The notes below the pieces were generated by a model that saw nothing but the letters and a program-made list of their open reading frames with translations, did no database searches and was not told the DNA's origin. From Macrostomum lignano (taxonomy: Eukaryota): 64,000 nt of DNA. This document shows, one piece after another, positions 3,966 through 52,108 of this stretch (within the stretch, counting starts at the first letter, position 1; each line of letters starts with the position of its first letter). Location of the stretch: assembly GCA_002269645.1 (NCBI GenBank), contig NIVC01000529.1, positions 1-64,000 on the forward strand, written 5' to 3'. The position numbers and the translations under genes were made by a program.

Positions 3966-4809
3966 CAGGTTAAACGAGATCAAAACTGGCATCACGTGAG
4001 TCAAATATGGCAAAGTCAAAAGCCCCCTCCCCTCAGCTTCCTGTCATATTCGTGCGTCTTAACTTGTTTCTGCTTTGAATCCAGTGGACTCATCTTCAAC
4101 TTTAATATTTTCTTGTTTTGCTGTCAGACCAACCGAAGGCGGTTACAACTTACCTCATTGCACTTGCTGTCTGCCTGTTGTTTCTGACTCTGTAATCATT
4201 TGAAATCATTTTTCTATTCAGTGTTATAATGCTGACTGGGTTTTTATTGTTTTTCATTTAATTTTGCGCTTTTTTGTTTAACTGCTCTTTGCAAAAGAAA
4301 TTAGTATTCGAACTAGCTGACCCCATCAGACCCCTGTAAATAGTTTGGTTGCGATGGCAACTGTATTGCAAAAATAATTTAACATTTTAAACCCCAGCTC
4401 TTGTCTATAACAAAATAGTTCACTTTTGTGTTGATATTAATTACTAACTAATGTGTTACAATACTTATATACATACGGTACTAATTTTGGTAGTAACGAA
4501 GCCTACAAAGTCATCAATATAGTATAATTGTAACTTTATTTTAACACGTTCGATCCACTTTAAGCACACTTATTCTACTTACTTAGATGTTGGCGTTTAG
4601 CTACTGTTATTAGTAGTGCATATTGGCTACTTATAAACGAAAACTTATCAAATTAATGGTAATCGAAAATTATTGAATGTGCTGTTCTTGCAAAAATAAA
4701 TTTTGGTTACTTAAATAAACTGCTTCTTAGTAGTCGCGGCCCTCAGTTAACTGGAATTTGGCATTGTGCCAGACTTTACTGATAACATATACCGAAATGC
4801 TGATGCATG

Positions 4810-5480
4810 CCAAAGAGAGATACAGCTGAGAAAGAAAGGAAGAAAGGAGACCGAAGGGAGGGTGAAGTGAGGGCGAAGAGAGAGCATAGAAGTATAGAGA
4901 GGGAGAAAAGAAGGTATAGAGAAGGCGAAGAGAGGGTGTGAAGGGAGGGTGAAGAGAGGGTGTGAAGGGAGGGTGAAGAGAGGGTATAGAGAGGGCGAAG
5001 AGGGGGTGAAGGGATTACGAAGAGAGGGTGAAGGGATTACAAAGAGAGGGTGAAGGGATTACAAAGAGATGGTGAAGGGATTACAAAGAGAGGGGGTGAA
5101 GGGAGGGTGAAGAGAGGGTATAGAGAGGGCGAAGAGGGGGTGAAGGGATTACGAAGAGAGGGTGAAGGGATTACAAAGAGAGGGTGAAGGGATTACAAAG
5201 AGATGGTGAAGGGATTACAAAGAGAGGGTGAAGGGATTACAAAGAGAGGGTGAAGGGATTACAAAGAGAGGGTGAAGGGATTACAAAGAGAGGGTGACGG
5301 GAGTACGAAGAAAGGGGAATGGTGGGCGAAGGGAGGGCGAAGGGAGGGCGAAGAGAGGGCCAAGGGAGGGCCAAGGGAGGGCGAAGGGCGGGCGAAGGGA
5401 GGGCGAAGGGCAGGCGAAGGGAGGGCGAAGGGAGGGCGAAGGGAGGGCGAAGGGAGGGCGAAGGGAGGGCGAAGGGAAAA
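4810..5480 (+). repeat. Purine-rich 22-bp and 11-bp (GAAGGGAGGGC) arrays
   Basis: Direct reading. Confidence 0.9.
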
Positions 5481-6902
5481 GGAGAGGGTTCATAAGCTCC
5501 TCTTAACATCTGAAAGTTTACAAGTGGAGTCTTAGTTAATTCTGCTCCCATCATGAACCTCGCGAAGTGTTCCAGCCAAATGCAGACAGTAACAAGGGCA
5601 GACTGCAAGACTAGAAGAGCAGAATAGCAGAATAAGAAGCTTTCTGATTACTGTTTACCTGCCAGTGTGAGCACGTGACCCTACAGCTCAAGGCTGGCCA
5701 GGTGTGTAGATGCGCCGGAAATTCCATCTCGAACCAGCCGACCTCAAAAGTGCGCACGGCTGCTCAAACACACACGCAAACACACCCCCTGACACACCTC
5801 ACACTCCCATGAACCTCGAGAGGATCGAGATTTACGTCAGGCAAATTAGGAGAGTATAGACATCCGCAGGCTTTTGCAATTTCCTGGAGGCTGCTGCTGC
5901 TTCTGCGGTTCGGGAAAATTCCTTTCATCCGTGTTTCTGCGTTAATCAAAATTCCCAGTTGGAGAAGCCTAAGCCTTAGTTATTTTATGGGAAACACTGC
6001 AGGATCCACTTTGCAAAGTCCTCTAATGGACTTGCTTGTCTTTATAGAGCTGCTTTGGAACTGCAAAAGGAACTCTCGGGTGATTGGCGGCGCTTTCTTG
6101 GCTTCCTGTTTTGTACTTCATCTGCGCAGCGTTGTGGACTGGGAAAAATCTGTTCACAAAGGCTAGAGAGAGAGAGGGGGGCGCATATCTATTTTTTTAC
6201 AATATTTGACACCACAAATAAACTTGACGACTGTGACCTGACCTGAGCCCAAGAGAAGAAACGACGAGAAATTAAATTTAAAATAACGATGTACGTGCAC
6301 ATTCATTAGATGTCAGCGAAGCTGATGGACACCGAAGGTACCATCCATGCATTCGTGTCTTCACGCATGCAAGCCGCCGTAGCATATCAGAACGGCAAAA
6401 CGATGGCTGCACCACCATCTGGGACACTGGCGTCCTCAGGCAGCGGTGTGAGGATTCTGCGACGCTATCAAGTACGAGTAAAATGTACTTGCGACTTCAG
6501 CAAGCCCGATCCCAGTCTGGCACAGGAAGCAGATGCGCACTCTGCATCAAAATCCTCCCTCAGACTTGTGCTGCTCTCCTCAGTCCAGCAGCAACTCTTT
6601 TTGTCGAGGCTCCGCTTCGTGTTTGTAGGTATTCATCGTACATTAGGACCACAAAAGATGTACATCACCTGACTGACTGGCGCCTCGCTTATCCAGCCTC
6701 ATATTTTAGACCCGTAGCCTCGGGAGTCGAGAATATTCTGCACTGCACTCACTTTAGGGGAGGGGCTAAATCATTAAAATACCCTTAAAAATATCCACGC
6801 AATAAATCACCCGAGCTCAAGTTGCATTCAGTTTGTGCCAGACACGTGCATTTAAAATGCGCTCTTGCACCAGGGTCAAGCAGGGGAAATGCGCGCTTGT
6901 CC

Positions 6903-7435
6903 AGAGGGAGAGAGGAGAGAGGGAGAGGGAGGGAGGGAGAGGGAGAGAGAGCGAGAGGGAGAGAGAGGGAGAGAAGGAGAAGGAGAGAGGGAGAGAGGGA
7001 GAGAGGAGAGGGAGAGAGAGGGAGAGAGAGCGAGAGAGGGAGAGAGGGAGAGAGAGAGGAGAGAAGGAAAGAAGGAGAGAGGAGAGAGGAGAGAGAGAGG
7101 GAGAGAGGGAGAGAGGGAGAGAGAGGGGGAGAGAGAGGAAGCGAGGGGAGAGGGAGAGAGGGAGAGAGAGGGGGAGAGAGAGGAGAGAGGGAGAGAGGGA
7201 GAGAGAGGGGAGAGAGAGGAGAGAGGGAGAGAGGAAGAGAGAGGAAGAGAGAGAGGGAGAGAGGGAGAGAGAGGGGAGAGAGAGGAAGCGAGGGAGAGAG
7301 GGAGAGAGGGAGAGAGGAAGAGAGAGGGGGAGAGAGAGGAGAGAGGGAGAGAGAGGGGAGAGAGAGAGCGAGGGAGAGAGGGAGAGGAGAGAGAGGGGAG
7401 GAGAGAGAGGGAGAGAGGGAGAGTGGGAAGGCCTG
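6903..7435 (+). repeat. GA-rich homopurine low-complexity tract
   Basis: Almost entirely A/G. Confidence 0.95.
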
Positions 7436-7699
7436 TGAAATGGGGAGACAGGGCAAAACCGAAAGCAAGAGCCACTGCCACTGCCGTATTTACCGTCAAG
7501 ATGCTTGAGCTCCCCAATTCGCTGAAGAGTTTTGCCGCAGTATATCGCAATCTGCAGCTAAATGATTCAAATTCACAAACAGTTTATACTCGTATTTAAT
7601 GACGGATTTCCACAAGTGTTTACAGGTAGCTACGAGTATATACTCGTGTGTCTCTATTGATCTCAGTAAAATTGACTCTTTCGTTGCCAAGCTGCATGC

Positions 7700-8849
7700 T
7701 CAAACGCTCGAGTCGACGAAGCATTTCAGCGCCTGAGCTTCGTCTGGTGGCATGAGCTGCCCATTTCTTGGAATTTGCTGCTCCTGCTGCTTCTGCTGCG
7801 GCTCCAGAAGCTGCTGCTGCTGCTGTTGGTTCTCAATTCGTCTCATCTGCTGAGCCGAGCTTTCCGCCTCGTTGCCATAGCAACCAGCCAAACAGCTGGG
7901 CAGCATCTGCACCAGACATGTCTTGAACCTGTTGTTACTGGCAACGTAGATGAAGAAGTTGCAGCTTCCGTCCAGTGAGCCAACGGCATTGGAGACCAGC
8001 GTCAGGGCGATGTACACACCTGGGGTCAGGTGGGTCAGGGTGATGTACACACCTGGGGTCAAGTGGGTCAGAGTGATGTACACACCTAGGGTCAGGTTGG
8101 TCAGGGCGATGTACACACCTGGGGTCAGGTTGGTCAGGTTGATGTACACACCTGGGGTCAGGTTAGTCAGGGCTATGTACACACCTGGGGTCAGTTTGGT
8201 CAGGGCCATGTACACACCTGGGGTCAGTTTGGTCAGGGCTATGTACACACCTGGGGTCAGTTTGGTCAGGGCTATGTACACACCTGGGGTCAGTTTGGTC
8301 AGGGCCATGTACACACCTGGGGTCAGTTTGGTCAGGGCTATGTACACACCTGGGGTCAGTTTGGTCAGGGCTATGTACACACCTGGGGTCAAGTGGGTCA
8401 GAGTGATGTACACACCTGGGGTCAGGTTGGTCAGGGCGATGACGCCCCAGGCCAGCTGCGGCAGCTGGCAGGCGATGTACAAGTTGGTGAGCATGAGCAC
8501 AGTTCTGGTAGCCTGTCCGCTTCTCTGCTCGGCGCACCGTCTGGCCCGGTGTCCCTGGCCGTGCTGGCTGCGCAGCTCCCGGCCGGACCGGCGCACCCGC
8601 AGCACCGTCAGCCAGTTGCACACGCAGGCGGCCAGCACGGGGCCGCCGATCTGCAGGCCGAAGTTCACCAAGCCGGTGTACATCCTGGTCAGCTTGGTGG
8701 TGGCGATCTCAGCGTAGTGCAGGCCGTCTGGACAGGCGGCCAGCCGGAGGTTGACCTCCATGAAGCGCGGGGTGCCGAGCGTCAGGGCGAGGATGCAGAG
8801 GCCGATTGTCACGCATTTGAGGTGGCGTCGGAGCGGCAGAGAGCGGCTT
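7700..8849 (-). CDS. GPCR coding exon 2 (TM4-TM7, C-tail); 8020-8415 may be an intron
   Basis: Acceptor ccacag, phase 2. LGTPRFMEV (TM4), QIGGPVLAACVCNWL (TM5), YIACQLPQL (TM6), GSCNFFIY (TM7 NxxxY), Gln-rich tail. Confidence 0.75.
7995..8445 (-). repeat. 33-bp in-frame repeat (TPGVYIALTKL x13) within GPCR
   Basis: 13 units counted in the ORF translation. Confidence 0.95.
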
Positions 8850-9289
8850 CTGTGGTTTGTAGAAGTTTCAGGTGCTTTCTTTAGGGCCGCGCACGAAATC
8901 GAACCATGGGGGTCGTGGCGCTACCCCTAGTAGTAAGAGTGACTCAGGTGGGACTCAGGTGTATCATAGCTGACGCATTAAATGGCACTTTATCTCGAAC
9001 AGCGAGATTGAATTATTCAATGTACCATGCAAGGTGACATTGGATTTTGACATTTCTTTACCGTCTAATCATCTCCTTTCAGGCTAAGTGCTGCAGTGGC
9101 GACAGAGCGCTTTTGCGGGCCTTTCAGCTGATTAAAGAAGCCGGATCCAATTAGCTAAATAACAGCCCACAGCTCTGCTACAAAATGACAGGGCGACACA
9201 GAATCGGTTCTTGGGTTTTTAATCTTCAAATTGCAACCCTGGATCATATTATCTAGCCTTAAATCATGTGTTTGATTTCTGCGAAGCAG

Positions 9290-9645
9290 CTTGCTTGCCG
9301 ATGGGGTGGTGGGTCAGTTATTGCGCACAAGTGGTGAAGCAGCTTGCTTGCCGATTGGGGTGGTGGGTCAGTCAGTGCGCACTACTAACTAACTAAATAA
9401 GTAATACGGCGCCTCAGCCATTGAACAGGCTCTTACGCCACAAGACTGACCCAAACAGGGCTGGTGGTGGGTCAGTCAGTGCGCACAAGTGAAGCGGCTC
9501 GCTTATCAATTGGGGTGTTGGGGTGGTGGGTCAGTCAGTGTGCACAAGTAAAGCGGCTCGCTTATCAATTGGGATGTTGGGGTGGTGGGTCAGTCAGTGC
9601 GCACAAGCGAAGCGGCTCGCTTATCGATTGGGGTGGTGGGTCAGG
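9290..9645 (+). repeat. Degenerate repeat of about 56 bp in GPCR intron
   Basis: ggggtggtgggtcagtcagtgcgcacaag recurs about 6 times. Confidence 0.8.
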
Positions 9646-9740
9646 CCATAATTAAAGTCCAAAATTTAACTGAGTGCGGGCTGGCAGCTATCGCCTATTA
9701 TTTAATGTCATTAATTAATGAATTGAATGAAGGTGCAAAC

Positions 9741-10195
9741 CTTAGGGGAGCGTAGATCTTGATGACTCTGGACAGAGCGATGAGCAGAATCAGCCAGTTG
9801 TGCGCCATCACCAGCGAGACTCTCAGCGCCCAAGCTGGCGGGTGCAGGTAGGCCAATGCCAGGTAGAACTCCCTAGAATGGCCGCCGCTCACCTGGAGCG
9901 TATGGCAGGCATTGTCTAGAAGGTTCAGCAGTACATAGAGCGTGTCCGGCACGGCCAGGTAGCGAAGTAACCTGGCCAGCTCAGACTGAGCTCCCGCTCG
10001 AGTCAGCACCGCATAGGACAGGCTGTTGAGCAGTATTCCAGCGCCTGTGAGCAGCATCTGCGCCAGGTTCAGTAAGACTACCAGAGCCAGTAGTGGCCCG
10101 CTGCTCTGGTACCTGTAGTCCGCCTCGGTGCAGTTGACGATTTCCACGAATCTGTAGTACACGGCCGGGGCCGGAGTCCTGCCTGGGGCGAGCAT
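9741..10195 (-). CDS. Rhodopsin-class (peptide/FMRFamide-receptor-like) GPCR, coding exon 1 (TM1-TM3)
   Basis: GILLNSLSYAVL (TM1 N), LRYLAVPDTLY (TM2 LAxxD), NWLILLIALSRVIKIYAPLR (TM3/ICL2). Phase-2 donor AG|gtttgc. Confidence 0.8.
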
Positions 10196-10499
10196 GTCAG
10201 TCAGTAAAAGAGCCTCTCACACGGGAATCTGCAAGAGAATTCGATTACCTGCTACTCCCCTTCGGCCTGCCCGCTCACCTGGCTTTAGTAGCCATGCTCG
10301 GCTGAGTCAGCAAGCCGGTTCGCTTTGCCGCGATTGGCCCAGCCAATATGGAAATTTTCCAATGTAAAATTCCAATTATGCTAGTTAGCCGGCTGGAGCA
10401 TGTGATGCCAAGACTGACTTGGAATTTTGCTATTGAATTATCGCGTGAGCTTCTGTGCGCAACCCGTAACAATACCTTATAACAGGTAGTTAATACACA

Positions 10500-13347: not shown

Positions 13348-14193
<846 letters not shown>

Positions 14194-14259
14194 CTAGCAA
14201 ATATAAATATACTACTACTAATACTACTGTTACTGCTTATAGTATAAATACTACTACTA

Positions 14260-16640
<2,381 letters not shown>

Positions 16641-16910
16641 CCTGATTTGTGTTTTTTCTGTTTCTCTGTCTGTGTACGTCTCTCTCTACATGTCGTTGTC
16701 TCTCTTATCCAGCTATTTCTTCTATCAAACCTAGATAAACCTAATAATGTATCTAACAAAAATAGAAGCAGGACGTGAAAGAGAGGCCCGACAGAGACAC
16801 GGCAAGCAGAGAAAACACAAACAAACAAAAGAAGAGCAACTCAGTCAGTTATAAGATAAATAAACACACAATAACACAGGAGTCCGCCAATATTCCCAGT
16901 AAAGTCAGAC

Positions 16911-17440
16911 CTGACGCAATAGTAGACACCGGGACTGCTATTAGCATAGCTGGCGTTGCCGCCGCATTCGTATAAATAATGCTGATGATGCTGATTGTGA
17001 TGCTGGGACTGATGCTGATGGGGCTGAGCAAACTGCTGATGTTGCTGATAGTAAAGCTCATAGGGATCACTTAGCTGCTGATGCGCAGGGATCAATGAAT
17101 CAAAGTCGGCAGCAGCAGCAGCTCCAAGTGGCTCAACAAAAAGCTCATCTTGCTGATATGCGGGCGTCATCAGCGGGTCAGCGTACAGCACCGGGTCTGT
17201 CGACGAAGCGGCACCAGCCGCCGAGCTTGAAGTGGCGATGGACTCGGCATCGTATTTAACAACACCTTCGACAGGATGCTGATGCTGAGGAGGATGCTGA
17301 GGCTGATAATAATCTGACCAGTAGTACTCGGGAGCAGGCTGAGGCGGGTAGCAACCAGCTTGACTGTTGCCAAGCACCAGGTCTAGAGGATCCAGACCCA
17401 GAAGCTGCTGATGCTGCTGATACTGCTGTTCCGGATCCAT
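16911..17440 (-). CDS. RBPJ: Probable alternative first coding exon of Su(H), short isoform (Q/H/Y-rich)
   Basis: ATG at 17440 (MDPEQQYQQ), open frame to AG|gtctga, phase 2 matching the acceptor at 16141. TATA box upstream. Confidence 0.6.
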
Positions 17441-17566
17441 ATTTATATATTTATAATGATGATTTCTACCTCGATGGGAATTCTCAGACGGGATTATCGC
17501 ACAGAATTGCTCCCACACAGAAGCTCCAGCGAAAGACTCACACAGAGACTCGAAGCTTGGAGCAGC

Positions 17567-24797: not shown

Positions 24798-25545
24798 GAG
24801 ATGAGACCAAGCGGGATCTCAAGGTCGTTCAGTAAGCCACAAAGAGTCCATTTCAATTATGAGATGAGACCAAGCGGGATCTCAAGGTCGTTCAGTAAGC
24901 CACAAAGAGTCCATTTCAATTATGAGATGAGACCAAGCGGGATCTCAAGGTCGTTCAGTAAGCCACAAAGAGTCCATTTCAATTATGAGATGAGACCAAG
25001 CGGGATCTCAAGGTCGTTCAGTAAGCCACAAAGAGTCCATTTCAATTATGAGATGAGACCAAGCGGGATCTCAAGGTCGTTCAGTAAGCCACAAAGAGCC
25101 CATTTCAATTATGAGATGAGACCAAGCGGAATCTCACGGTCGTTCAGTAAGCCACAAAGAGTCCATTTGAATTATGAGATGAGACCAAGCGGGATCTCAA
25201 GGTCGTTCAGTAAGCCACAAAGAGTCCATTTCAATTATGAGATGAGACCAAGCGGGATCTCAAGGTCGTTCAGTAAGCCACAAAGAGCCCATTACAATTA
25301 TGAGATGAGACCAAGCGGAATCTCACGGTCGTTCAGTAAGCCACAAAGAGTCCATTTCAATTATGAGATGAGACCAAGCGGAATCTCACGGTCGTTCAGT
25401 AAGCCACAAAGAGTCCATTTCAATTATGAGATGAGACCAAGCGGGATCTCAAGATCGTTCAGTAAGCCACAAAGAGTCCATTTCAATTATGAGATGAGAC
25501 CAAGCGGAATCTCACGGTCGTTCAGTAAGCCACAAAGAGTCCATT
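24798..25545 (+). repeat. 63-bp tandem repeat, about 12 near-identical units
   Basis: Direct reading. No spacers. Confidence 0.97.
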
Positions 25546-39764: not shown

Positions 39765-40445
39765 TCAACCGTCCGCTGCTGACGCCACTGCCGCTGCCGC
39801 TCCCAGGAGTCGGGTTGTCGACAAAGTCGACGGCGAAGCGACGGCAACGGCTAGGCCGCGTCGGCGCTTCTTCGGCGACGGCGACGGAGCCGGCGACGAG
39901 GCCTCCTGAGACGCGGCCGACGATTCGTCGGTTGGCGAAACCATCGCAACTGCGCGACGCTTTCGACTAATTACTGTCGCCTTTGATGTTGCCGCCTTTG
40001 ACGCCGCCGTCTTTGAAGCCGCCGCCTTTGTGTTTGCCGCTTTTGGAGCTACCGCTTTTGAAGCTGCCGCCTTAGAGATTGGTCGACTTTTTGCGCCCCT
40101 GCGTCGACCAACAGGCGACGGCGATGGCGATGGCGAAGGCGAAGGTGTTGGCGATGGCGACGACGACTTTGTAATAGTCTTTGTCGCTGATGGCCTAGTC
40201 TTTGTAGCAGTCTTTGTTGCGGCGGCTTTTTTAATTTTGCCGGCTTGGACGGCGGCCGAGCGGCCATTCTGAGAGGCGGCGGCGCCTCGCTGCTGCGCCT
40301 GCTTTTTCTTTGTAGCAGCAGAAGTAGCAGAAGCAACTGGCGACTCAGTAGAAGTGGTCGCTGACTTCAACGGCGATTTTATTGGCGATTTTGCTGGCGG
40401 ATTTTTGGCCACCGTTGAAGGCTGCTGCTCGTCGCGCTTGCTTTG
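39765..40445 (-). CDS. PDS5: PDS5 exon 10 (K/A/S-rich basic tail, PKKRRR NLS-like)
   Basis: tcatctag|QSKRDEQQ.., open to TGA at 39765. Exact C-terminus uncertain. Confidence 0.7.
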   Translation of the reverse strand, partial: QSKRDEQQPSTVAKNPPAKSPIKSPLKSATTSTESPVASATSAATKKKQAQQRGAAASQNGRSAAVQAGKIKKAAATKTATKTRPSATKTITKSSSPSPTPSPSPSPSPSPVGRRRGAKSRPISKAAASKAVAPKAANTKAAASKTAASKAATSKATVISRKRRAVAMVSPTDESSAASQEASSPAPSPSPKKRRRGLAVAVASPSTLSTTRLLGAAAAVASAADG

Positions 40446-41154: not shown

Positions 41155-41194
41155 CTGCGGGATTGGTGGCAGCAGATTGGGGGCATTAATAAGG

Positions 41195-41730
41195 GCGAGG
41201 TAGGGGTGAGATATATAATAAAACGGTGAGAGAGGGAAGACAGGGGTGAGATATATACGAAAACAATGAGATAGAGGGGAGAAAGGGGTGAGATATATAA
41301 GAAAACGGTGAGATAGAGGGAAGACAGGGGTGAGATAGAGGGGAGACAGGGGTGAGATATATAAGAAAACGGTGAGATAGAGGGGAGACAGGGGTGAGAT
41401 AGAGGGGAGACAGGGGTGAGATAGAGGGAAGACAGGGGTGAGATAGAGGGGAGACAGGGGTGAGATAGAGGGAAGACAGGGGTGAGATAGAGGGGAGACA
41501 GGGGTGAGATAGAGGGGAGACAGGGGTGAGATAGAGAGGAGACAGGGTGAGATAGAGGGGAGACAGGGGTGAGATAGAGGGGAGACAGGGGTGAGATAGA
41601 GGGGAGACAGGGGTGAGATAGAGGGGAGACAGGGGTGAGATAGAGGGGAGACAGGGGTGAGATAGAGGAGAGACAGGGGTGAGATAGAGGGGAGACAGGG
41701 GTAAGATAGAGGGGCGAAAAGGGGTAAGAC
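41195..41730 (+). repeat. 22-bp minisatellite, PDS5 intron 8
   Basis: GGGGTGAGATAGAGGGGAGACA. Confidence 0.95.
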
Positions 41731-41768
41731 AGCATAGAAAAGATGGCTTATAGGTTAGTGAAACTCAC

Positions 41769-42060
41769 CTAGCCAATTGTTTGGCATCCTTTGGCGACTC
41801 GAACTCGGGATCATTGGCCAGCAGGTGCACGGCATAAGGCAGAGTGTAGTCTGGCAGCACGGCAAAGAATGTAACCCGATCGTTGGCAATGACGGACTGC
41901 TTGCTGGCCAGGTACTCCCTGCGGGCGGCCACGCAGCGGCTGTAGTAGGTGCGCGCAGTCTGCAGCAGCTCCTTGTCCTCGGCGGCCTCGGGCACGTAGG
42001 CGAACATCGCCATGAACTGCAGGGGCAGCTTGAACTTCACCAGGCCTCGGTGCAGCTTGC
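41769..42060 (-). CDS. PDS5: PDS5 exon 8
   Basis: ttcccag|(G)KLHRGLVKFKLPLQFMAMF..LPDYTLPYAVHLLANDPEF|gtgagt. Confidence 0.9.
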
Positions 42061-42084
42061 CTGGGAATGAGATGGGATCAGAGT

Positions 42085-42620
42085 CATCCAGCATTGAAGC
42101 AGCTCCCACTATAATAAAAGCAGAAGACTCACCCAGCATTGAAGCCGCAATAAAAGCAGAAGACTCATACAGCATTGAAGCCACAAAAAAGCAGAAGACT
42201 TACCCAGCATTGAAGCCAATTCCTAACCAACAATAAAAGCAGAAGAGTCACCCAGCATTGAAGCCACAAAAAAGCAGAAGACTCACCCAGCATTGAAGCC
42301 ACAAAAAAGCAGAAGACTCACCCAGCATTGAAGCCACAAAAAACCAGAAGACTCATCCAGCATTGAAGCCACAAAAAAGCAGAAGACTCACCCAGCATTG
42401 AAGCCACAATAAAAGCAGAAGACTCACCCAGCATTGAAGCCACAATAAAAGCAGAAGACTCACCCAGAATTGAAGCCACAATAAAAGCAGAAGACTCACC
42501 CAGCATTGAAGCCACAATAAAAGCAGAAGACTCACCCAGCATTTAAGCTACAATAAAAGCAGAAGACTCACCCAGCATTGAAGCTACTCCCCACCCAACA
42601 ACAAAAGCAGAAGACTCACC
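42085..42620 (-). repeat. 36-bp minisatellite containing a 5' splice site, PDS5 intron 7
   Basis: GTGAGTCTTCTGCTTTTATTGTGGCTTCAATGCTGG. Confidence 0.95.
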
Positions 42621-43172
42621 CAGCACAGCATGCCGCACCTCCTTGCACGGGTCGCAGACGGTCAAGGCCAGAGTTTGGAATCGCTCGCAGTCCAAGAGCG
42701 GCACCAAAGCTTGGCGTTTGCAAACGCGCAGCAGCGCTTTGGCCGCGCAGACTCGCATCTGCGCCATCTCGCCAGCTTCCAACTTGGCGCCTTTGCCCGA
42801 AGAAGAAGAAGACGGATTGCCGTCGTACAGAATGATCTGGTGGAACAGGTCCACAATGGATTGGGCCGTATCGGAGGTGCAGTCGGCGGCAGCGGACGAT
42901 GAGGCAGCGGAAGCTGAGGCCAGCCCGATCAGGTAGTGACAGAGGCAGCGTATGCTGGCCAATTTCACCTGGGCAAGATGCGACAAAGACTCAGTAGGGC
43001 TCCAACGGCTCAAGTCTCTGGCTGAACTGGCAGCTGTCGATTTGCTGCGACTACCAGCAGCTGCGGCGCCTCCAGCGGATGATGAAGGAGCTTGCCGGAC
43101 GAATTCGGGCAACCGCTTGGCGACAAGATTGGCTACTTTGGATTGGTACTTGAGGGCGCTCTGTTTCAGAAT
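42620..43172 (-). CDS. PDS5: PDS5 exon 7
   Basis: ccccacag|ILKQ..AQVKLASIRCL..MRVCAAKALLR..CDPCKEVRHAVL G|gtgagt. Confidence 0.85.
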
Positions 43173-43199
43173 CTGTGGGGATTCGTTGTTGAATGAGAG

Positions 43200-43650
43200 G
43201 ACTATGAGACTGGGGTGACAATAGGGGTGAGACTGGATGATGAGATTAGGGTGAGATTGGATGATGAGATTAGGGGTGAGACTGGATGATGAGATTAGGG
43301 GTGAGACTGGATGATGAGACTAGGGGTGAGACTGGGGGCAACATCAGTGAGATTGGATGATGAGACTAGGGGTAAAACTAGGGGTGAGACTGGAGGTTAG
43401 GCTAGGGATGAGACTGGAGATGAGACTGGATGATGAGACTAGAGATGAGACTGGATGATGAGACTAGAGATGAGACTGGATGATGAGACTGGAGATGAGA
43501 CTGGATGATGAGACTAGAGATGAGACTGGATGATGAGACTAGAGGTGAGACTGGATGATGAGACTAGAGGTGAGACTGGATGATGAGACTAGAGCTGAGA
43601 CTGGAGGTGAGACTGGATGATGAGACTAGATATTACGAGACTAGGATAGA
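43200..43650 (+). repeat. GATGAGACT(G/A)GA-based array, PDS5 intron 6
   Basis: Direct reading. Confidence 0.9.
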
Positions 43651-43712
43651 ACTGACCGGTGATACTAGAAGCGCCCTCCCCAGCAGACAATTAAAAAAGG
43701 CCAGAGTCAGAC

Positions 43713-44294
43713 CTGTCCCAGAGCATCCAGCCTGGGCACGCAGAGTTCGCTGCCGGAGCTAATCTTGACGGCATCGGCCACCAGGCTGTCCAGCTCGCCG
43801 GCAATCTGCGGCGCCAGATCCGTTGCCTGCAGCGCTGTCAGACACTTGGCCGCCACTTTGGCAAGCGACGAGCACGACGCCGAAGTTTTGGCGACGTCGC
43901 AGATTCGACGAAGACGCGGCACGACAGCATCGATGGCTTCTTGTCGATCTTCGGTGAACAGCGGTGTCAAATTCAACAGCAGGCGAAGACAGACCTCGGC
44001 GGTGTCCATCTCCATGGACTCGTCGCCCAGGCATTCGACAACGTAGTCGAAGGTGTCGTCTAAATCGACAGTGTGCCTCAGATAGAAGCTGAGCATGTTG
44101 AGCAGCAGCAGGCCCTTGTGCTGGGTGACTTCGCACGCTTCGCCGGGCAAAATGTTGGCCGGGTCTTCGCGGCCGCTGATTAGCAGGTTCACCAGGCTGG
44201 TGACGGATTCGCGGTCGAATAGCACCGGGCCAACTCGTTCTAGCAGAGTCTTCACCGTGATGCGATAGTTGATGGCGTTCTCCGTCTCTTTAGC
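43713..44294 (-). CDS. PDS5: PDS5 exon 6
   Basis: ctcccag|AKETENAINYRITVKTLLERVGPVLFD..LDALGQ|gtctga. 'LLERIAP' motif region. Confidence 0.85.
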
Positions 44295-44344
44295 CTGGGA
44301 GTGGTTTCAGAGCAAATAGAGTGCGTCTTCAATGCTGCACAGCA

Positions 44345-45000
44345 ACGGGGATTCGCCTTGGATACAACCTTGGTGAACGGGGGATTCCCCTTGGATACAA
44401 CCTTGGGAGACGGAGATTCCTCTTGGATAGGACCTTGGAAAACGGGGATTCCCCTTTGATAGGACCTTGAAAGACGGGGATTCCCCTTGGATACAACCTT
44501 GGAAGACCGGATCCATCTTGGATAGGACCTTGAAAGACGGGGATTCCCCTTGGATAGGACCTTGAAAGATGGGGATTCCCCTTGGATACAACCTTGGAAG
44601 ACCGGATCCATCTTGGATAGGACCTTGAAAGACGGGGATTCCCCTTGGATACAACCTTGGAAGACCGGATCCATCTTGGATAGGACCTTGAAAGACGGGG
44701 ATTCCCCTTGGATAGGACCTTGAAAGACGGGGATTCCCCTTGGATACAACCTTGGAAGACGGGATCCCTCTTGGATAGGACCTTGGAAAACGAGGGATCC
44801 TCTTGGATAGGATAGAACCTTGGAAAAAGGATTCCCTTTGAAAACAATCAATAAAAACGGGAATTTTCTTTCGATATACCTTGAAAAACGGGGATTCCCT
44901 TTGGATACTACTTTGGAAGACAGGGATTCCTCTTGGATAAACCGTGGAAAAACGGAGATTCCCCTTGGCTGCGACTTTGGAAAACGGGGTTTCCATTTTG
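44345..45000 (+). repeat. About 26-27-bp array, PDS5 intron 5
   Basis: GGGGATTCCCCTTGGATAGGACCTTGAAAGAC-type units. Confidence 0.9.
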
Positions 45001-45074
45001 ATGCGACCTTCAAAGCTACAGATGAAAACTTGATCATGACGGGAAGTCCCCTTAAATATAAAACCAATGCGCAC

Positions 45075-45401
45075 CTTCTTGCCAATATGAAGAGCCTGAT
45101 CGTGGCTAGCCAGCAGGCTTCGCAGCAGTTCCGCAGCCTTGTCGCACGGACAATCCTTGGACAGAATTTTGGTTAACAGCTGGCGCATCGGCTTCTCGCG
45201 GTGTAGAAAATTGAAGAATTTGCGCAAATACTCGTTGGCCCGTTCGGCGTGTTGGAAATAAATAGACAGAGATCGAAGCTTAGCCATGATGACGGACTCG
45301 GATTCTGGAGACAGTTTATCTGGCTCGGCCGAGATTATCTCTAGGATGGCGCTGGTCAGCTGGGTCACGTGATACTGCGTCTTCAGCATCTCCACTAGTG
45401 C
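45075..45401 (-). CDS. PDS5: PDS5 exon 5
   Basis: gatgcag|ALVEMLKTQ..EYLRKFFNFL..HIGKK|gtgcgc. Confidence 0.85.
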
Positions 45402-45559
45402 CTGCATCGGAAATAATATTGAATATTCGTATTAGAGACAAAAGAATACTTCGCTTTTATTACTCATAGTAGTATCCAGCCAAAGCTTATATTTAGTTTA
45501 TTATTAAGGAGCCTCATAGGGCAATTGAACACATTAAGAAATTAGGCCTGTTAGTTCAA

Positions 45560-45935
45560 TTAGGCATCCAATGGAACCAATTGGGCATTCTATGGACACA
45601 ATTTCGGCACCACATAGACACATTTGGGCATCCTATAGACATTCAAGCGCACCATAGACACATTTGGGCATCCTATAGATATTCAGGCACACCATAGACA
45701 CATTTGGGCACCCTATAGACATACATGTATTTTAAGGCACCCGATAGACATTTTTAGGCACCCTATAGACATATTTTTAGGCACTTTATAGACACATTTG
45801 GGCACTCTATAGACACATTTAGGCACACCAGACACATTTGGACACCTTAGAAACACATTTTTAGGCACACTATAGACAAATTTTTAGGCACCCTATAGAC
45901 ACATTTGGGCACCCTATAGACCCTATAGACACATA
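45560..45935 (+). repeat. Degenerate array of about 21 bp, PDS5 intron 4
   Basis: GGGCACCCTATAGACACATTT-type units. Confidence 0.85.
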
Positions 45936-46058
45936 GTTAAGTCGTGGACCCATTTTAGCCCCATATAAAAGTTACTCCCCCACTACGGACCCCAATAAGA
46001 CCCACCGAAGTGATTATAAATCAAAAGCATAGCAATTTCTAAAACAACTCATCCAGAC

Positions 46059-46190
46059 CTTAGTAGACGGATTGCTAAACGAGCAGAAGCAGCGCAGCAG
46101 GGCTCGCATCCGATCTTTTGAACCCAGACTGTAGGGCACCAATGAGGCCTTGAAGTGCCGTTCCACTGCTATGCGATCCCAGTTGCTCTC
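46059..46190 (-). CDS. PDS5: PDS5 exon 4 (not in ORF track)
   Basis: ttctag|ESNWDRIAVERHFKASLVPYSLGSKDRMRALLRCFCSFSNPSTK|gtctgg, matching PDS5 '[27 protein letters not shown]'. Confidence 0.85.
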
Positions 46191-46599
46191 CTAGAAGGCA
46201 GGCGACATGTTTAAAAACGATAAATTATATTATTTTCGATACATATCGGCGACGTTTTTTATTTACTTATCTTAAAGCCTTTTTCTATTTTACAGTACTC
46301 AAATCTCAACTTTTTAATCTCTATTCACTATAGTCATACACATTTTCTCGTAAATCTATCACAATAAATCCAATTACAAAAATTTCTTTTTTTGATGCTT
46401 TAACTCCATCATAGGGATACAGAACTATTTCACTAATCCCAATAATCCCACTAAGTTCCCCGCCGAAGTCAAATTATCTCACCTCAGAAATCCCACCATC
46501 TCCACGCCCCTTAATCCCATCTCCCTAATTCCCACACCCCTATTTCTATCTTCTTAATCCTATTCCTATCCTCCTAATACCATCTTCTTAATCGAATAT

Positions 46600-47330
46600 A
46601 CCTAATGCCATCTCACGGATCCAATCTCCCTAATTGCATCTTGCAAATCTAATCCCCCTAATCACATCTCGCAAATCCCATCTTCCTAATCACATCTCGC
46701 AAATCCCATCTTCCAAATCACATCTCGCTAATCCATTTCCCTAATCACATCACGCAAATCCAATCTCCCTAATCACATCTCGCAAATCCCATCTTCCAAA
46801 TCACATCTCGCTAATCCATTTCCCTAATCACATCTCGCTAATCCATTTCCCTAATCACATCTCGCAAATCCCATTTCCCTAATCACATCACGCAAATCCA
46901 ATCTCCCTAATCACATCTCACAAATCCCATCTTCCTAATCACATCTCGCAAATCCCATCTTCCTAATCACATCTCGCTATTCCATTTCCCTAATCACATC
47001 TCGCAAATCACATCTCGCAAATCCCATCTCCCTAATCGCATCTCGCTAATCACATCTGGCTAATTCCATCTCCCTAATCACATCTCCTTAATCACATCTC
47101 CTTAATCACATCTCACAAATCCCATCTTCCTAATCACATCTCGCAAATCCCATCTTCCTAATCACATCTCGCTAATCCATTTCCCTAATCACATCTCGCA
47201 AATCCCATCTCCCTAATCGCATCTCGCTAATCACATCTGGCTAATTCCATCTCCCTAATCACATCTCCTTAATCACATCTCCTTAATCACATCTCGAAAA
47301 TCCCATCTCCATAATTCCCAAACCCCTATT
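46600..47330 (+). repeat. CCCTAATCACATCTCGC-based array, PDS5 intron 3
   Basis: Direct reading. Confidence 0.9.
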
Positions 47331-47366
47331 CCTATCTTCCTAATCCAAAGCAATCTAATCTCTTAC

Positions 47367-48080
47367 CTGGAAGTACATGTGCATGATAGCATTAACGCAC
47401 TGGGACAGCCTAGACCACACAGTTTTATTGCCAGACTTAATCAAATCAGCATTCATAATGTAGGTTTTATAGATGCTGGCGAGGCTGGTAAGGGCAGCCC
47501 GGCGCACGCCTTGGTCTTTGTCGCGGGACCGATCAATTAAAATCGATAAATAGTCCTCCGGCAGCGACTCCAGCTCCTGCTTGGCCAGTTCAACTACTTG
47601 GCCAATCACGCAGTCCCTGATGTCCACGTGGGCGTCAATACTTCGACCGCGGAGCAGCGCAACCAGGGTGTCACGCAGGTCGGGATTCGTTCGCAGCAGC
47701 TGAGGGACGGAGGCCACGCAGATTCGCCTGACCTCCAAGCTGACGTCAACAAATCTACCGATGAAAGCTTTCCACAGATCCGGCTGAAGCTGCACCAGAT
47801 TGCCGGTGGTCTCGCTGAATAGCTTCGCCATAAGTCGACAGGCCCGCTTCCGTTCGCGCTCGTGATTTGACAGCAGCTTCAGCTCAAGCATGGGCAGCAC
47901 GGGACTCACGAACACGTGATCAATCTTGTGCAGCTCATAGATTAATGAGAATACTAATTCGTCTCTGATGCCAGACTGTTGAGATTTGAGCTGCGGCTGC
48001 TCATCGGAGTCCTCGGACGAAAGCACCAGCATATCCTGCAGCATCTGGTGAATCATCTGATCCAGGTGCTTCACAGTTTC
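47367..48080 (-). CDS. PDS5: PDS5 exon 3
   Basis: LIYELHKID..VLPMLELKL..LWKAFIGRFVD..DRSRDKDQGVRRAA..YFQ|gtaaga. Confidence 0.9.
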
Positions 48081-48234
48081 CTGCACAATGATAAGTAAGG
48101 CTAGGTAAGTAGTAGATTGTAAAACAAGCTGGTTGGCAACCAACATTTACTTGCCAGGGGCATTAAAACTTGTTGGCAGGGAACCAAAACCGGTTCCTGT
48201 TGCCAGGGAGATTAAAATAGTTGTCAATACCACT

Positions 48235-49635
48235 AAAACCGGTTGCTAATGACACTAGAACCGGTTGCTAATGACACTAGAACCGGTTGCTAATGACACT
48301 AGAACCCGTTGCTAATGACACTAGAACCGGTTGCTAATGACACTAGAACCCGTTGCTAATGACACTAGAACCGGTTGCTAATGACACTAGAGCCGGTTGC
48401 TAATGACACTAGAGCCGGTTGATAATGACACTAGAGCCGGTTGATAATGACACTAAAGCCGGTTGATAATGACACTAGAACCCGTTGCCAATGACACTAG
48501 AGCCGGTTGCTAATGACACTAGAGCCGGTTGCTAATGACACTAGAGCCGGTTGCTAATGACACTAGAGCCGGTCGCTAAAGACACTAGAACAGGTTGCTA
48601 ATGAGACTAGAACAGGTTGCTAATGAGACTAGAACAGGTTGCTAATGAGACTAGAACAGGTTGCTAATGAGACTAGAACAGGTTGCTAATGAGACTAGAA
48701 CAGGTTGCTAATGACACTATAACCGGTTGCTAATGACACTAGAACAGGTTGCTAATGACACTAGAAACGGTTGATAATGACACCAGAACCAGTTGCTAAT
48801 GACACTAGAACCGGTCGCTAATGACACCAGAACAGGTTGCTAATGACACTACAACCGGTCGCTAATGACACTAGAGCCGGTTAATAATGACACTAGAACC
48901 GGTTGCTAATGACAGTAGAGCCGGTTGCTAATGACACTACAACCGGTCGCTAATGACACTAGAACAGGTCGCTAATGACACTAGAGCCGGTTGCTAATGA
49001 CACTAGAGCCGGTTGATAATGACACTAGAGCCGGTTGATAATGACACTAGAGCCGGTTGATAATGACACTAGAACCCGTTGCTAATGACAGTAGAGCCGG
49101 TTGCTAATGACACTACAACCGGTCGCTAATGACACTAGAACAGGTCGCTAATGACACTAGAGCCGGTTGCTAATGACAGTAGAGCCGGTTGCTAATGACA
49201 CTACAACCGGTCGCTAATGACACTAGAACAGGTCGCTAATGACACCAGAACCGGTTGCTAATGACAGTAGAGCCGGTTGCTAATGACACTACAACCGGTC
49301 GCTAATGACACTAGAACAGGTTGCTAATGACACTAGAACCGGTCGCTAATGACACTTGAACCGGTCGCTAATGACACTAGAACAGGTCGCTAATGACACT
49401 AGAACCGGTCGCTAATGACACTAGAACAGGTCGCTAATGACACTAGAACCGGTCGCTAATGACACTAGAACAGGTCGCTAATGACACTAGAACCGGTCGC
49501 TAATGACACTTGAGCCGGTCGCTAATGACACTAGAACCGGTCGCTAATGACACTAGAACCGGTCGCTAATGACACTAGAACAGGTTGCTAATGACACTTG
49601 AACCGGTTGCTAATGACACTAGAGCCGGTTTCCAG
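48235..49635 (+). repeat. 22-bp minisatellite CCGGTTGCTAATGACACTAGAA, PDS5 intron 2
   Basis: Direct reading. Confidence 0.97.
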
Positions 49636-49708
49636 GGACTAGAAAACCTACAGAATTGCTTGCTTAGAACCTCCAAGCTAAATTACCAGTAGAGATTAGA
49701 AATTTTAC

Positions 49709-50053
49709 CCGCAAAAACCGCGAAGCCAGCTGATAGCAGCGGGGCTCCTGCATCTTCTTCGGTTGAATAATGAACTCGAGCACGTATTTGACGGTGTCAG
49801 AGCCTAACAATTCCATCTCCTCGTCAACAACTTTAACAGCGGCATCTAACAGATAGCGAACGCAATCGTCTGGCGTGTCCTCCCAACTCCAGATGTCCAC
49901 AGTGCGCACGATGGTGAACAGGAATCGGAAGAACTCAAAGCAGGCCCGCTTGCCATCCGGATTGGTGTGGCACACGGAGATGAAATCGGTTTGTATCAGG
50001 CTCTGACAGAAGTAGGACAGGTTCTGGTAGGCCACGTCCTCTTTCGATTGGAT
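49709..50053 (-). CDS. PDS5: PDS5 exon 2
   Basis: accgcag|IQSKEDVAYQNLSYFCQSL..LASRFLR|gtaaaa, 345 nt. Confidence 0.85.
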
Positions 50054-50109
50054 CTGCGGTGCGGCGATCAGGAGGAGAGGTGTCAGAAAGAGGATCTAAG
50101 TTTGTCAGA

Positions 50110-52065: not shown

Positions 52066-52108
52066 GCGTCAGAGTCTCCCCGTCCCCATCATCAGTGAGT
52101 TGCTTCAC

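Follow-up and report, generated by a model that had tools for sequence, protein, structure and literature searches.

A minisatellite array inside a Macrostomum lignano receptor exon as a probable intron gained by amplification of an AG/GT segment

The birth of spliceosomal introns is a long-standing question for which recent clean examples are very few. The locus described here raises it within a window of 64 kb (the whole stretch of Macrostomum lignano DNA that was analysed), where a 33-bp minisatellite lies in frame inside the coding sequence of a G protein-coupled receptor (GPCR) gene: is the array an intron made out of an exon, or a repeat that is translated? From comparison of the sequences, we consider it probable that the 396-nt array is a genuine intron, which arose when an exon segment containing AG/GT (the slash marks the splice position) was amplified in tandem. 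Being in frame and inside an ancestral exon, the array would strictly be classed as an exitron. The locus is of value because the ancestral exon is kept in paralogues, the duplicate is purely exonic and three diverging copies are found in one genome, and the case would show a segment that was itself too short crossing the intron length threshold through minisatellite growth.

The receptor gene and its in-frame array

The host gene encodes a rhodopsin-class GPCR, as given by the precomputed Pfam domain PF00001 (7tm_1) on the matching public protein P0001. The repeat-free form has seven hydropathy peaks, and the NFFIY sequence of TM7 resembles the NPxxY motif. A sequence search of the PDB for the receptor found no relative, and a search for known structured RNAs found none. 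The exon map is given in Table 1; a start codon at 10195 (MLAPGR) was considered and replaced by exon 0 and intron 0, given P0001. At the 3' end P0001 splices out the 3' intron and closes with a terminal exon at 4750..4727 (LTEGRDY and a stop codon), while P0008 and P0009 read through this intron into a Q-rich tail ending at a stop codon at 7702..7700.

Table 1. Features of the receptor gene and of the candidate intron.
Feature	Position	Strand	Remarks
GPCR exon 0	10279..10295	-	ATG GCT ACT AAA GCC AG, MATKA-R; matches P0001
Intron 0	10179..10278	-	100 nt, GTGAGC...GGCAG; required by P0001
GPCR exon 1	9741..10178	-	TM1-TM3; fits P0001
Intron 1	8850..9740	-	891 nt, GTTTGC...CCACAG; holds 59-bp minisatellite
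GPCR exon 2a	8416..8849	-	TM4-TM6 to Pro codon of unit 1
33-bp minisatellite	8000..8440	-	Tandem Repeats Finder and unit table; 13 full units 8440..8012, partial 14th 8011..8000
First donor (candidate)	8410..8418	-	CAG/GTGTGT, G of GT at 8415; motif recurs in every unit
Candidate intron/exitron	8020..8415	-	396 nt = 12 units; phase 2 inside Pro codon, in frame
Last acceptor region (candidate)	8020..8044	-	ATCACCCTGACCCACCTGACCCCAG/; two CTGAC (YTRAY) branch-like motifs and C-rich tract
GPCR exon 2b	7913..8019	-	rest of ECL3 and TM7 with NFFIY, to ...FKTCL
Alternative 3' intron	4751..7912	-	CTG/GTGCAG ... TTCCAG/; spliced in P0001

Tandem Repeats Finder reported the array at 8001-8441 with a period of 33, 13.4 copies, 92% matches, 0% indels and a score of 693. 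The unit consensus ATCGCCCTGACCAACCTGACCCCAGGTGTGTAC encodes IALTNLTPGVY, and the frame 7700..8920 (-) stays open across the whole array, which bears out the description in the first-pass annotation of a 33-bp unit repeated 13 times in frame between TM6 and TM7. The same annotation had placed CCCCAG/GTGTGT in each unit with one variant reading TAG, and this also holds: 12 of the 13 units carry it, and unit 11 (8110..8078, -) reads CCCTAG/GTGTGT. The variant is not an in-frame stop, since the codon changes from CCA to CTA (Pro to Leu). Each unit is an 89-100% copy of a 33-nt exon segment, and the partial 14th unit consists of the 12 nt ATCGCCCTGACG at 8011..8000 (-). A proposed seed duplication was confirmed as an 11-nt homology, ATCGCCCTGAC, which occurs once where the array starts and again within the partial 14th unit.

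The unique sequences flanking the array are CAGCTGGCCTGGGGCGTC on the 5' side and CTGGTCTCCAATGCC on the 3' side. When read unspliced, the 5' flank runs into unit 2 as ATCACTCTGACCCACTTG; the spliced one-unit reading continues as ATCGCCCTGACGCTGGTCTCC. Removal of 8415..8020, proposed earlier to take out 396 nt or 12 units and to leave ...WGVIALTNLTPGVYIALTLVSNAVGSLDGSCNFFIY..., was reproduced exactly, giving the junction NLTPGVYIALTLV and restoring a normal TM6-ECL3-TM7 region. If the array were retained it would add 132 residues to ECL3 at the start of TM7, with peptides of the type LTKLTPGVYIALTK and a Kyte-Doolittle 19-residue mean of 0.3-1.35, which is below transmembrane level. The N-type units carry NLT glycosylation sequons.

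Tandem arrays are ordinary in this window, with 46 of them covering 38% of its length, and the unusual point is that this one lies within coding sequence. No other minisatellite of the window combines an open frame with homology-supported coding sequence on its two sides. In a neighbouring PDS5-like gene, all six of the mapped introns consist to 55-94% of one private minisatellite, and in the intron at 42619-42061 the donor CTGG/GTGAGT occurs about 13 times, of which the annotation takes the first copy. In a scan limited to the window, AGGT was found in most units in five of 92 array-strand combinations; chance alone would place it in roughly 12% of 33-nt units.

Exonic origin and candidate splice signals

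Across the 764-Mb genome the array was found only at three homologous loci, all of them near-identical copies of this gene, which rejects the insertion of a dispersed satellite or transposon. The copies at C714 (copy B) and C860 also carry 13 units. In the within-genome paralogues compared (six groups), the coding sequence is contiguous at this position, with a gapless codon-for-codon alignment of the unit to TM6-ECL3-TM7, and neither an intron nor a repeat was present at the array position in any group. What the unit copies is the last part of TM6 together with the first part of TM7, and ECL3 is only a few residues long in all paralogues. The closest paralogue, which is 52% identical and lacks the array, reads CCG CAG GTG TAC here, so that the AG/GT is already in place. 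Because the paralogues are uninterrupted and align without gaps to the repeat-free form, the ancestral state was one exonic unit without an intron, and the single unit lacking an intron that the first-pass annotation had proposed to look for in sister species was seen in every more distant within-genome paralogue. A pre-existing intron with amplified boundaries (a 'mirage') is rejected on the same comparison, since the unit is wholly exonic and the paralogues are intronless at this point. The spliced product aligns to the paralogues without gaps, as is expected under the Rogers model, in which an intron is gained when an exon segment with AGGT is duplicated in tandem.

All three copies, between which dS is about 0.023, have the array as a fixed feature, and it is therefore older than the recent genome duplication. 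The earlier proposal of a nascent intron arising from duplication of an AG/GT exon segment is well supported in its exonic origin and in its ancestral state, given the gapless intronless paralogues, and indirectly in its splicing, but 'nascent' has to be qualified for an array shared by all three copies.

The candidate intron has GT-AG ends in a consensus-like context, as does a U2-type intron; its 396 nt (3 x 132) lie inside an ancestral coding exon and their retention keeps the frame, as in an exitron. The first donor is conserved in unit 1 of all three gene copies; the confirmed local donors GTCTGG, GTTTGC and GTGCAG are weaker. The last acceptor has the context, the CTGAC motifs and the C-rich style previously claimed for it, and is comparable to the confirmed local acceptors ...CACCGCAG, ATTCCCAG, TCCCGCAG and AAACCACAG. 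Measured against nine confirmed local introns, CAG/GTGTGT (8418-8410) and CTGACCCCAG/ (8029-8020) fall within or above the range. At the level of motifs, the two CTGAC sequences of each unit place a candidate branch A at 15 and 6 nt upstream of the 3' splice site, or at 48 and 39 nt when counted from the previous unit. All of these putative splice signals are derived from former codons. An exonic CAG/GTGAGC at 9895-9887 is left unspliced in P0001, however, so motif strength alone is insufficient in this gene.

The array may have been started by slippage or unequal exchange at the 11-nt ATCGCCCTGAC homology, the two copies of which are 33 bp apart, and could then have grown to 13 units within the very active minisatellite formation of this genome. 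A single duplication would be insufficient, because a 33-nt 'intron' is too short for splicing. After expansion the first CAG/GTGTGT would serve as the donor, while CTGAC motifs would offer the branch site and the C-rich tract with the CAG of a unit further downstream would form the acceptor. Of the donors, the most upstream should be used most, as happens in human F7 IVS7 and in the PDS5-like intron nearby. As every join of a donor to an acceptor rebuilds CCCCAG/GTGTGT, partly spliced products may be spliced again recursively, so that the mRNA would converge on one unit. Such a one-unit mRNA would encode a receptor of 402 or 378 residues with a normal short ECL3.

Gene models, array turnover and rival explanations

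The public proteins P0001, P0008 and P0009 all show the identical repeat-free junction. P0001 equals copy B with introns 0, 1 and 3 and the 396-nt array removed, without a mismatch in 378 residues; P0008 carries diagnostic substitutions of copy C and P0009 is of the A/B type, and at least two gene copies are covered. No end-to-end match to the spliced junction was found anywhere in this assembly, so for this assembly the models do not stem from an unexpanded allele, a paralogue or a retrocopy. An assignment of P0001 to the 2017 BOX15 annotation was withdrawn, as its UniProt accession belongs to a series (A0A1I8...) other than that of P0002, whose source is BOX15/NCBI; the earlier annotation behind the series is presumably the one described by Wasik in 2015. 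If these models are ab initio they only repeat the sequence signals, and if they are transcript-based they are exposed to k-mer collapse or to template switching by reverse transcriptase. All k-mers of the junction are present in the unspliced gene at k<=32, and absent ones first appear at k=33. Published M. lignano transcriptomes were assembled with Trinity, IDBA-tran and SOAPdenovo-trans at k=23-61, de Bruijn k=23-31 among them. Reverse transcriptase switches template at direct repeats and gives rise to false exitrons (PMC8240250). Either route, assembly collapse at k<=32 or such switching, can yield the repeat-free junction.

The 7TM core differs between copies A and C by five synonymous and two nonsynonymous changes (binomial by hand against 75% nonsynonymous sites, P about 0.013) and is under purifying selection; the overall omega is 0.34, and the gene thus works while it holds the array. 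The variant types of the array, seven synonymous and nine nonsynonymous, are consistent with neutrality (omega about 1) and reject the core's omega of 0.13 (P=0.001); the array variants look neutral. Position by position, A and C diverge by 8.6% within the array, compared with about 2% for unique intron sequence and 1.2% for exons. The K, N and H unit types swap freely, and the peptide sequence of the unit is unconserved. In internal units the 15 nt at the 3' end (ACCCCAG/GTGTGTAC, the PGVY codons) are nearly invariant. All 39 units of the three copies are open and free of indels, and each array has exactly 13 units despite unit turnover; neighbouring non-coding arrays show two- to four-fold size differences between the same three loci. 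A test of frame preservation has no power here, since only two of 99 possible single-base changes create a stop, small indels are absent from about 500 nt of unique intron sequence at this divergence, and 0% indels are also recorded for about half of the local arrays. The C-terminal tail evolves neutrally, with five nonsynonymous and two synonymous changes, which is explained by the annotated 3' intron.

Two of these observations count against the simplest form of the favoured reading. A plain intron predicts no length constraint, yet all three copies keep both their frame and their 13 units, and an intron running from the first donor to the last acceptor has no need of a near-invariant 3' 15 nt in its internal units. 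Both are covered by a dual-use exitron, removed from part of the transcripts but kept and translated in the rest, in which selection on the retained isoform or on an isoform ladder would keep 13 in-frame units. Such an element would account for the repeat-free models together with the conserved frame, the unit count and the PGVY/splice core, and the length in multiples of three, typical of exitrons, and the NLT sequons agree with it. We nevertheless give it little weight, as the unit peptide is unconserved with interchanging K, N and H types at an omega of about 1, a 33-bp unit keeps the frame automatically, and the agreement at 13 is weak when three copies amount to two independent comparisons.

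Unlikely, though it was the alternative named in the first-pass annotation, is an unspliced and translated coding VNTR, which would give a repetitive ECL3 of 143 residues and would make the repeat-free models artefacts of collapse, of template switching or of ab initio GT-AG prediction. The 39 open and indel-free units, their fixed count and the occurrence of AGGT by chance speak for it, as do the neglected exonic consensus donor at 9895-9887 and both artefact routes, the junction k-mers being uninformative at k<=32 and false junctions at direct repeats being documented. It would require, however, that 13 strong donors and 13 acceptors are ignored in a species whose real donors include GTCTGG and GTTTGC, and the junction shared by three separate models, which represent two or more of the paralogous copies, speaks against it. 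The neutrality of the array variants beside a constrained 7TM core also counts against translation, as do the short ECL3 of the paralogues and the duplication of the adjoining ends of TM6 and TM7 in the unit. That the array is neutral junk in a dispensable, decaying receptor paralogue is very improbable: the large lineage-specific GPCR family with its many paralogues and the neutral C-terminal tail would suit this, but the frames are intact in three of three copies, the 7TM core shows constraint against a neutral divergence of about 2% and the tail is accounted for by the 3' intron.

The gained intron remains the preferred reading. A wider proposal, which we regard as doubtful, is that runaway minisatellite formation is a general engine of intron growth and, at exonic AG/GT, of intron birth in M. 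lignano; this locus would then be the first 'self-regenerating', recursively removed intron, with its fixed 13-unit, in-frame array and the invariant core of its units also under selection as a dual-use exitron or through length-dependent splicing. Transgenesis of M. lignano is published (PMC5730564), so donor and acceptor mutants and a series of unit numbers can be tested in vivo. If the intron is confirmed and the pattern recurs in the genome, tandem-repeat instability would be linked to intron gain; if the repeat-free models are artefactual, the locus would serve as a warning on repeat collapse and false exitrons in annotation.

Comparison with known systems

Exon 3 of human DRD4 contains an in-frame 48-bp repeat of polymorphic copy number in the long cytoplasmic loop 3, with no AG/GT pair. 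It shares with the present array an in-frame minisatellite in a class A GPCR loop, there tolerated and translated, whereas the M. lignano array copies the ends of the transmembrane helices that border an extracellular loop of very short length. Human 'introns from tandem arrays', with splice-like units and removal of whole units, were reportedly described by Zhuo and colleagues in PNAS in 2007, and Roy and Irimia are said to have criticised them in 2008 as an RT-PCR artefact. The likeness lies in a splice-site-like sequence in each unit and an apparent removal of whole units, and the dispute means that cDNA evidence alone is insufficient. The M. lignano array differs from many of the human cases in its canonical GT-AG ends with good context, its conserved host protein, the function of which speaks for removal of the array, and the paralogues that fix the ancestral state.

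The intron gain in ATP2A1 reported in 2011 (PMC3265369) likewise drew donor and acceptor from copies of one exonic AG/GT, involved no foreign DNA and restored the original frame and protein at its junction. In that case one duplication of a long enough segment was sufficient, whereas the M. lignano segment is just 33 bp, and it would take twelve extra copies to provide enough length together with branch sites and a pyrimidine tract. ATP2A1 gained its intron about 0.5 Gyr ago (PMC3265369), while the gain proposed here would be recent, given the 52%-identical paralogue without it and the dS of about 0.023 between copies. Recent gains by local duplication were also inferred against relatives in the lineage-specific tandem duplication of potato RdRp (Ma et al., 2016, PMC4974935), which the relatives lack, and in Drosophila novel introns with duplicated proto-splice sites (Lehmann et al., 2010, PMC2891723). 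In potato the duplicated segment crosses an intron-exon boundary that was already there and takes over most of its signals from the parental intron, while all signals in M. lignano would derive from what was once coding sequence; each Drosophila case goes back to one duplication, since diverged, and none is an array.

Exitrons and 'falsitrons' (Schulz et al., 2021, PMC8240250) share the exon-internal position, the length in multiples of three and the direct repeats that may cause reverse transcription artefacts, but typical exitrons consist of unique coding sequence with weak sites, whereas the M. lignano candidate is a 13-fold self-repeat whose product rebuilds the splice site. A functional-looking splice site in each tandem unit, with use of the most upstream donor, is known from the amphioxus 'mirages' (PMC3087553) and from the 37-bp VNTR of human F7 IVS7 (PMC1557585), of which the PDS5-like intron at 42619-42061 is a direct analogue. 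The arrays of the 'mirages' and of F7 IVS7 extend introns at existing boundaries, whereas the 33-mer sits where none existed. The receptor locus is probably a further case of a known but rarely documented kind of intron gain.

Structure and origin of the 33-bp array

The 33-bp array lies between TM6 and TM7 of a rhodopsin-class GPCR (PF00001), which belongs to a large lineage-specific family according to a genome search with the repeat-free exon-2 protein; no sequence-level relative was found in the PDB. On the reverse strand, 13 full units run head to tail from 8440 to 8012, followed by a 12-nt partial copy (8011 to 8000). Tandem Repeats Finder gave a period of 33, 13.4 copies, 92% matches and 0 indels, with the consensus ATCGCCCTGACCAACCTGACCCCAGGTGTGTAC (translated IALTNLTPGVY). 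Together with unit-by-unit reading, this bore out the first-pass annotation of 13 in-frame repeats carrying CCCCAG|GTGTGT, a motif present in 12 of the 13 units. The variant unit noted there as reading TAG is unit 11 (CCCTAG|GTGTGT), in which the TAG reflects replacement of a Pro by a Leu codon, with no stop in frame, and the open frame from 8920 to 7700 is unbroken through the whole array. Recomputing the proposed removal with the first GT (8415) as donor and the last AG (8020) as acceptor again excised 396 nt and gave the product ...QLAWGVIALTNLTPGVYIALTLVSNAVGSLDGSCNFFIY... The seed duplication described earlier was also recovered, as an 11-nt self-similarity (ATCGCCCTGAC) at the borders of the array, from which slippage could plausibly have started.

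Coordinates of the GPCR gene, the 33-bp array at its three loci and other features of the window
Feature	Location	Strand	Remarks
GPCR exon 0	10295-10279	-	MATKA-R
GPCR intron 0	10278-10179	-	GTGAGC..GGCAG
GPCR exon 1	10178-9741	-	TM1-3
GPCR intron 1	9740-8850	-	GTTTGC..CCACAG
GPCR exon 2	start 8849	-	holds array
GPCR alternative 3' intron	4751-7912	-	donor CTG|GTGCAG at 7912; spliced in P0001
GPCR terminal exon	4750-4727	-	LTEGRDY*; used in P0001
GPCR Q-rich tail, read-through alternative	ends 7700	-	P0008, P0009
33-bp array, copy A	8000-8440	-	13 units
33-bp array, copy B	C714:79846-80274		13 units
33-bp array, copy C	C860:352230-352658		13 units
PDS5-like introns, six	41156-52108	-	minisatellite periods 20, 22, 28, 21, 36, 22
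PDS5-like intron with 36-bp unit	42619-42061	-	85% one minisatellite
32-bp array, another PDS5-like intron	44345-44994	-	0.79 AGGT per unit
45-bp repeat, last PDS5-like exon	39978-40073	-	2.1 copies; no AGGT
63-bp array	24798-25545	+	11.9 copies, 97% identical, no indels
CSL/Su(H)-like gene (presumed)	13348-17566	-	
Pure (ACT)107 array	13864-14185		
28-bp array	15072-15692		

The gene has alternative 3' ends, and the public model P0001 joins FKTCL| to the distal exon across 3.16 kb in which AG-rich arrays lie. At its N-terminus, which is partial (LGITCSS...), P0001 starts right after an AG (aagtcag|tcttggc, approximately 10413-10416, reverse strand), 117 nt upstream of the ATG. Many mRNAs of M. 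lignano undergo trans-splicing (PMC5730564), and this AG may thus be where a spliced leader is joined.

The genome search revealed many paralogues, nearly all in triplicate. In the most similar group (52% identity) and in four others the TM6-ECL3-TM7 region was uninterrupted and aligned without gaps to the repeat-free form, for example ALTNLTPGVYIALTLVSN with TLSSLSPQVYITLTLISN and VLLTIPTPVYIVIGLVGN, which indicates that the ancestor had a single unit and lacked an intron here. At the array site the closest paralogue has CCG CAG GTG TAC, so an exonic AG|GT was present before the array. These comparisons support in-situ amplification of pure exon sequence, and the earlier proposal of tandem duplication of an exonic AG|GT segment stands on the paralogue check.

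Protein models and selection at three loci

A search of the genome placed the array at three loci only, copy A in the window (contig C529), copy B on C714 and copy C on C860. Copies A and B are near-identical outside the array, and copy C is 1.2% divergent over the exons and about 2% divergent over the unique part of intron 1 (dS = 0.023). When introns 0, 1 and 3 together with precisely the 396-nt array were taken out of copy B, the result was P0001 (UniRef100_A0A1I8IYS7, 378 aa), with mismatches at 0 of 378 residues; copy A differed from it at two. A short-query search found the same repeat-free junction in P0008 (A0A1I8G6F6), which carries the diagnostic V to A and two Q to H changes of copy C, and in P0009 (A0A1I8FYM6), which is of A/B type. 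No end-to-end match to the spliced junction was found in the genome, which rules out an unexpanded copy or a retrocopy as the source of these models.

In the 7TM core (residues 1-332), copies A and C differ by 5 synonymous and 2 nonsynonymous changes (P about 0.013 in a binomial calculated by hand, with 75% of changes expected to be nonsynonymous), which points to a GPCR that stayed functional while carrying the array. The tail after FKTCL, with 2 synonymous and 5 nonsynonymous differences, looks to evolve neutrally, which is what a mostly intronic sequence would do. The variants in the 39 array units fall into 16 types, of which 7 are synonymous and 9 nonsynonymous (a synonymous share of 44%, in keeping with the 35% expected under neutrality); an omega of 0.13 was rejected (P = 0.001) and an omega of 0.34 was not (P = 0.12). 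By these patterns the array does not appear constrained like the 7TM core.

Local introns and tandem repeats

The assembly comprises 764 Mb in 5,269 contigs, and Mlig_3_7 was described as 764.4 Mb in 5,270 scaffolds, with 15% simple or tandem repeat and substantial redundancy (PMC5730564). In the window 46 separate tandem arrays occupy 38% of bases, so that a tandem array as such is ordinary here. When these were scanned, the 33-bp array was the only minisatellite open in frame with homology-supported coding sequence on both flanks, and its location is the unusual feature. The 63-bp array has one open frame repeating EMRPSGISRSFSKPQRVHFNY and AAG|GTCG in many units; it has no flanking ORF and is assigned to no gene. 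In a gene that is presumably CSL/Su(H)-like, by homology to RBPJ, the (ACT)107 array immediately precedes an exon, shares its open frame and is probably intronic, and the 28-bp array begins a few bases past the donor following ...SRRIKV.

The annotated protein P0002 (BOX15_Mlig024126g1) of the neighbouring PDS5-like gene was spliced-aligned to the window as a local reference, giving six clean introns. Each of the six consists to 55–94% of one private minisatellite, which makes a mostly-minisatellite intron normal in this genome; such introns are the rule, and how long an intron is seems to depend largely on the growth of its minisatellite. The 36-bp unit of one intron repeats the exon end and donor about 13 times (GCTTCAATGCTGG|GTGAGTCTTCTGCTTTT; CTGG|GTGAGT), and P0002 uses the most upstream donor copy, as in the human F7 IVS7 VNTR (PMC1557585) and the amphioxus 'mirages' (PMC3087553), to both of which this intron is a direct analogue. 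In the 32-bp array most units contain CCAAG|GTCC on the sense strand, and the internal AGGT sites are unused in the annotation. The 45-bp coding repeat is kept in P0002 (...KAAASKAVVPKAANTKAAASKTAASKAATSKA...) and is a minor control for a coding repeat without splice sites.

The PDS5-like donors were GTGAAG, GTAAAA, GTAAGA, GTCTGG and GTGAGT (twice), and the acceptors include CACCGCAG, CCTTCTAG and ATTCCCAG; the three introns of the GPCR gene itself have donors GTGAGC, GTTTGC and GTGCAG. Among these nine introns the candidate sites CAG|GTGTGT and CTGACCCCAG| rank as average to strong, in agreement with the earlier view that the last acceptor is of local style. An exonic CAG|GTGAGC in exon 1 (9895-9887, reverse strand, codons Q-V-S), a donor that looks perfect, is unspliced in P0001, so motif strength alone is not sufficient for splicing in this gene. 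If retained, the array would add 132 moderately hydrophobic residues (Kyte-Doolittle 19-residue mean 0.3–1.35) to a loop that is only a few residues long in every paralogue. The three public models, the lack of an unexpanded copy, the selection contrast, the signals, the local norm and the loop length all point to splicing, and we consider the candidate intron probably removed.

Alternative readings and known systems

If the models are transcript-based, two artefacts could give an identical junction. Spliced-junction k-mers up to k=32 all occur in the unspliced gene too, so a de Bruijn assembler can connect the 5' and 3' flanks by way of a single unit without a junction read; the published M. 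lignano transcriptome was built with Trinity, IDBA-tran, SOAPdenovo-trans (k=23-61) and overlap assemblers (PMC5173321), and the 2017 annotation merged StringTie models with BLAT-mapped de novo transcripts (PMC5730564). Reverse-transcriptase template switching at direct repeats produces false exitrons in cDNA that are absent from direct RNA reads (PMC8240250). Because the unit contains AGGT, such a gap comes out of any aligner as a canonical GT-AG intron. Zhuo reportedly claimed 'introns from tandem arrays' in humans in 2007, which Roy and Irimia reportedly criticised in 2008 as reverse-transcriptase artefacts. The main rival class is a non-spliced coding VNTR, as in human DRD4, where a GPCR-loop VNTR is translated; this appears unlikely here, because array variants are neutral-like while the 7TM core is constrained and the added residues would enter a loop that is otherwise short.

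All three arrays hold exactly 13 units and an open frame in spite of clear unit turnover, and their internal order varies: compared with copy A, copy B has one more K-type and one fewer H-type unit, and the K-block is wholly missing from copy C. At the three sites the copy numbers of neighbouring non-coding arrays vary two- to four-fold (8-mer 66.9, 39.9 and 68.9; 22-mer 47.4, 12.5 and 39.5; 59/54-mer 3.0, 3.0 and 5.5). The 15 nt at the 3' end of the unit (ACCCCAG|GTGTGTAC) hold only 5 of 76 variant instances. Neither this near-invariance nor the constant 13 units, for which three copies give only two independent comparisons, would be expected of a plain intron; a retained translated isoform, internal sites kept splice-competent, gene conversion or chance could account for both. 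The array fits the definition of an exitron, and a dual-use exitron with a translated isoform would fit these features and overlaps with removal as an intron, although we judge it slightly less probable even than the coding VNTR.

For removal of the array as an intron, the exon origin, canonical sites, public models and core/array contrast are observed, and the splicing steps are those we infer. U1 would engage the first CAG|GUGUGU and U2 a CUGAC of a downstream unit, with the first usable CAG past the branch point as acceptor. Any donor-acceptor join would re-create CCCCAG|GUGUGU, so partly spliced RNAs would remain substrates until too few units were left for an intron, and the mRNA would converge on one unit. 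Minisatellite growth would be needed for a workable intron, since one duplication of 33 bp would be too short to splice.

Intron gain by duplication of an exon segment with AGGT has been demonstrated experimentally for ATP2A1 (PMC3265369) and inferred for potato RdRp (PMC4974935) and Drosophila (PMC2891723). If its removal is real, the array adds a case to this known but rarely documented kind of intron gain, and differs from those cases in being multi-copy, in having a unit far below the length of a minimal intron and in drawing all of its signals from former codons.
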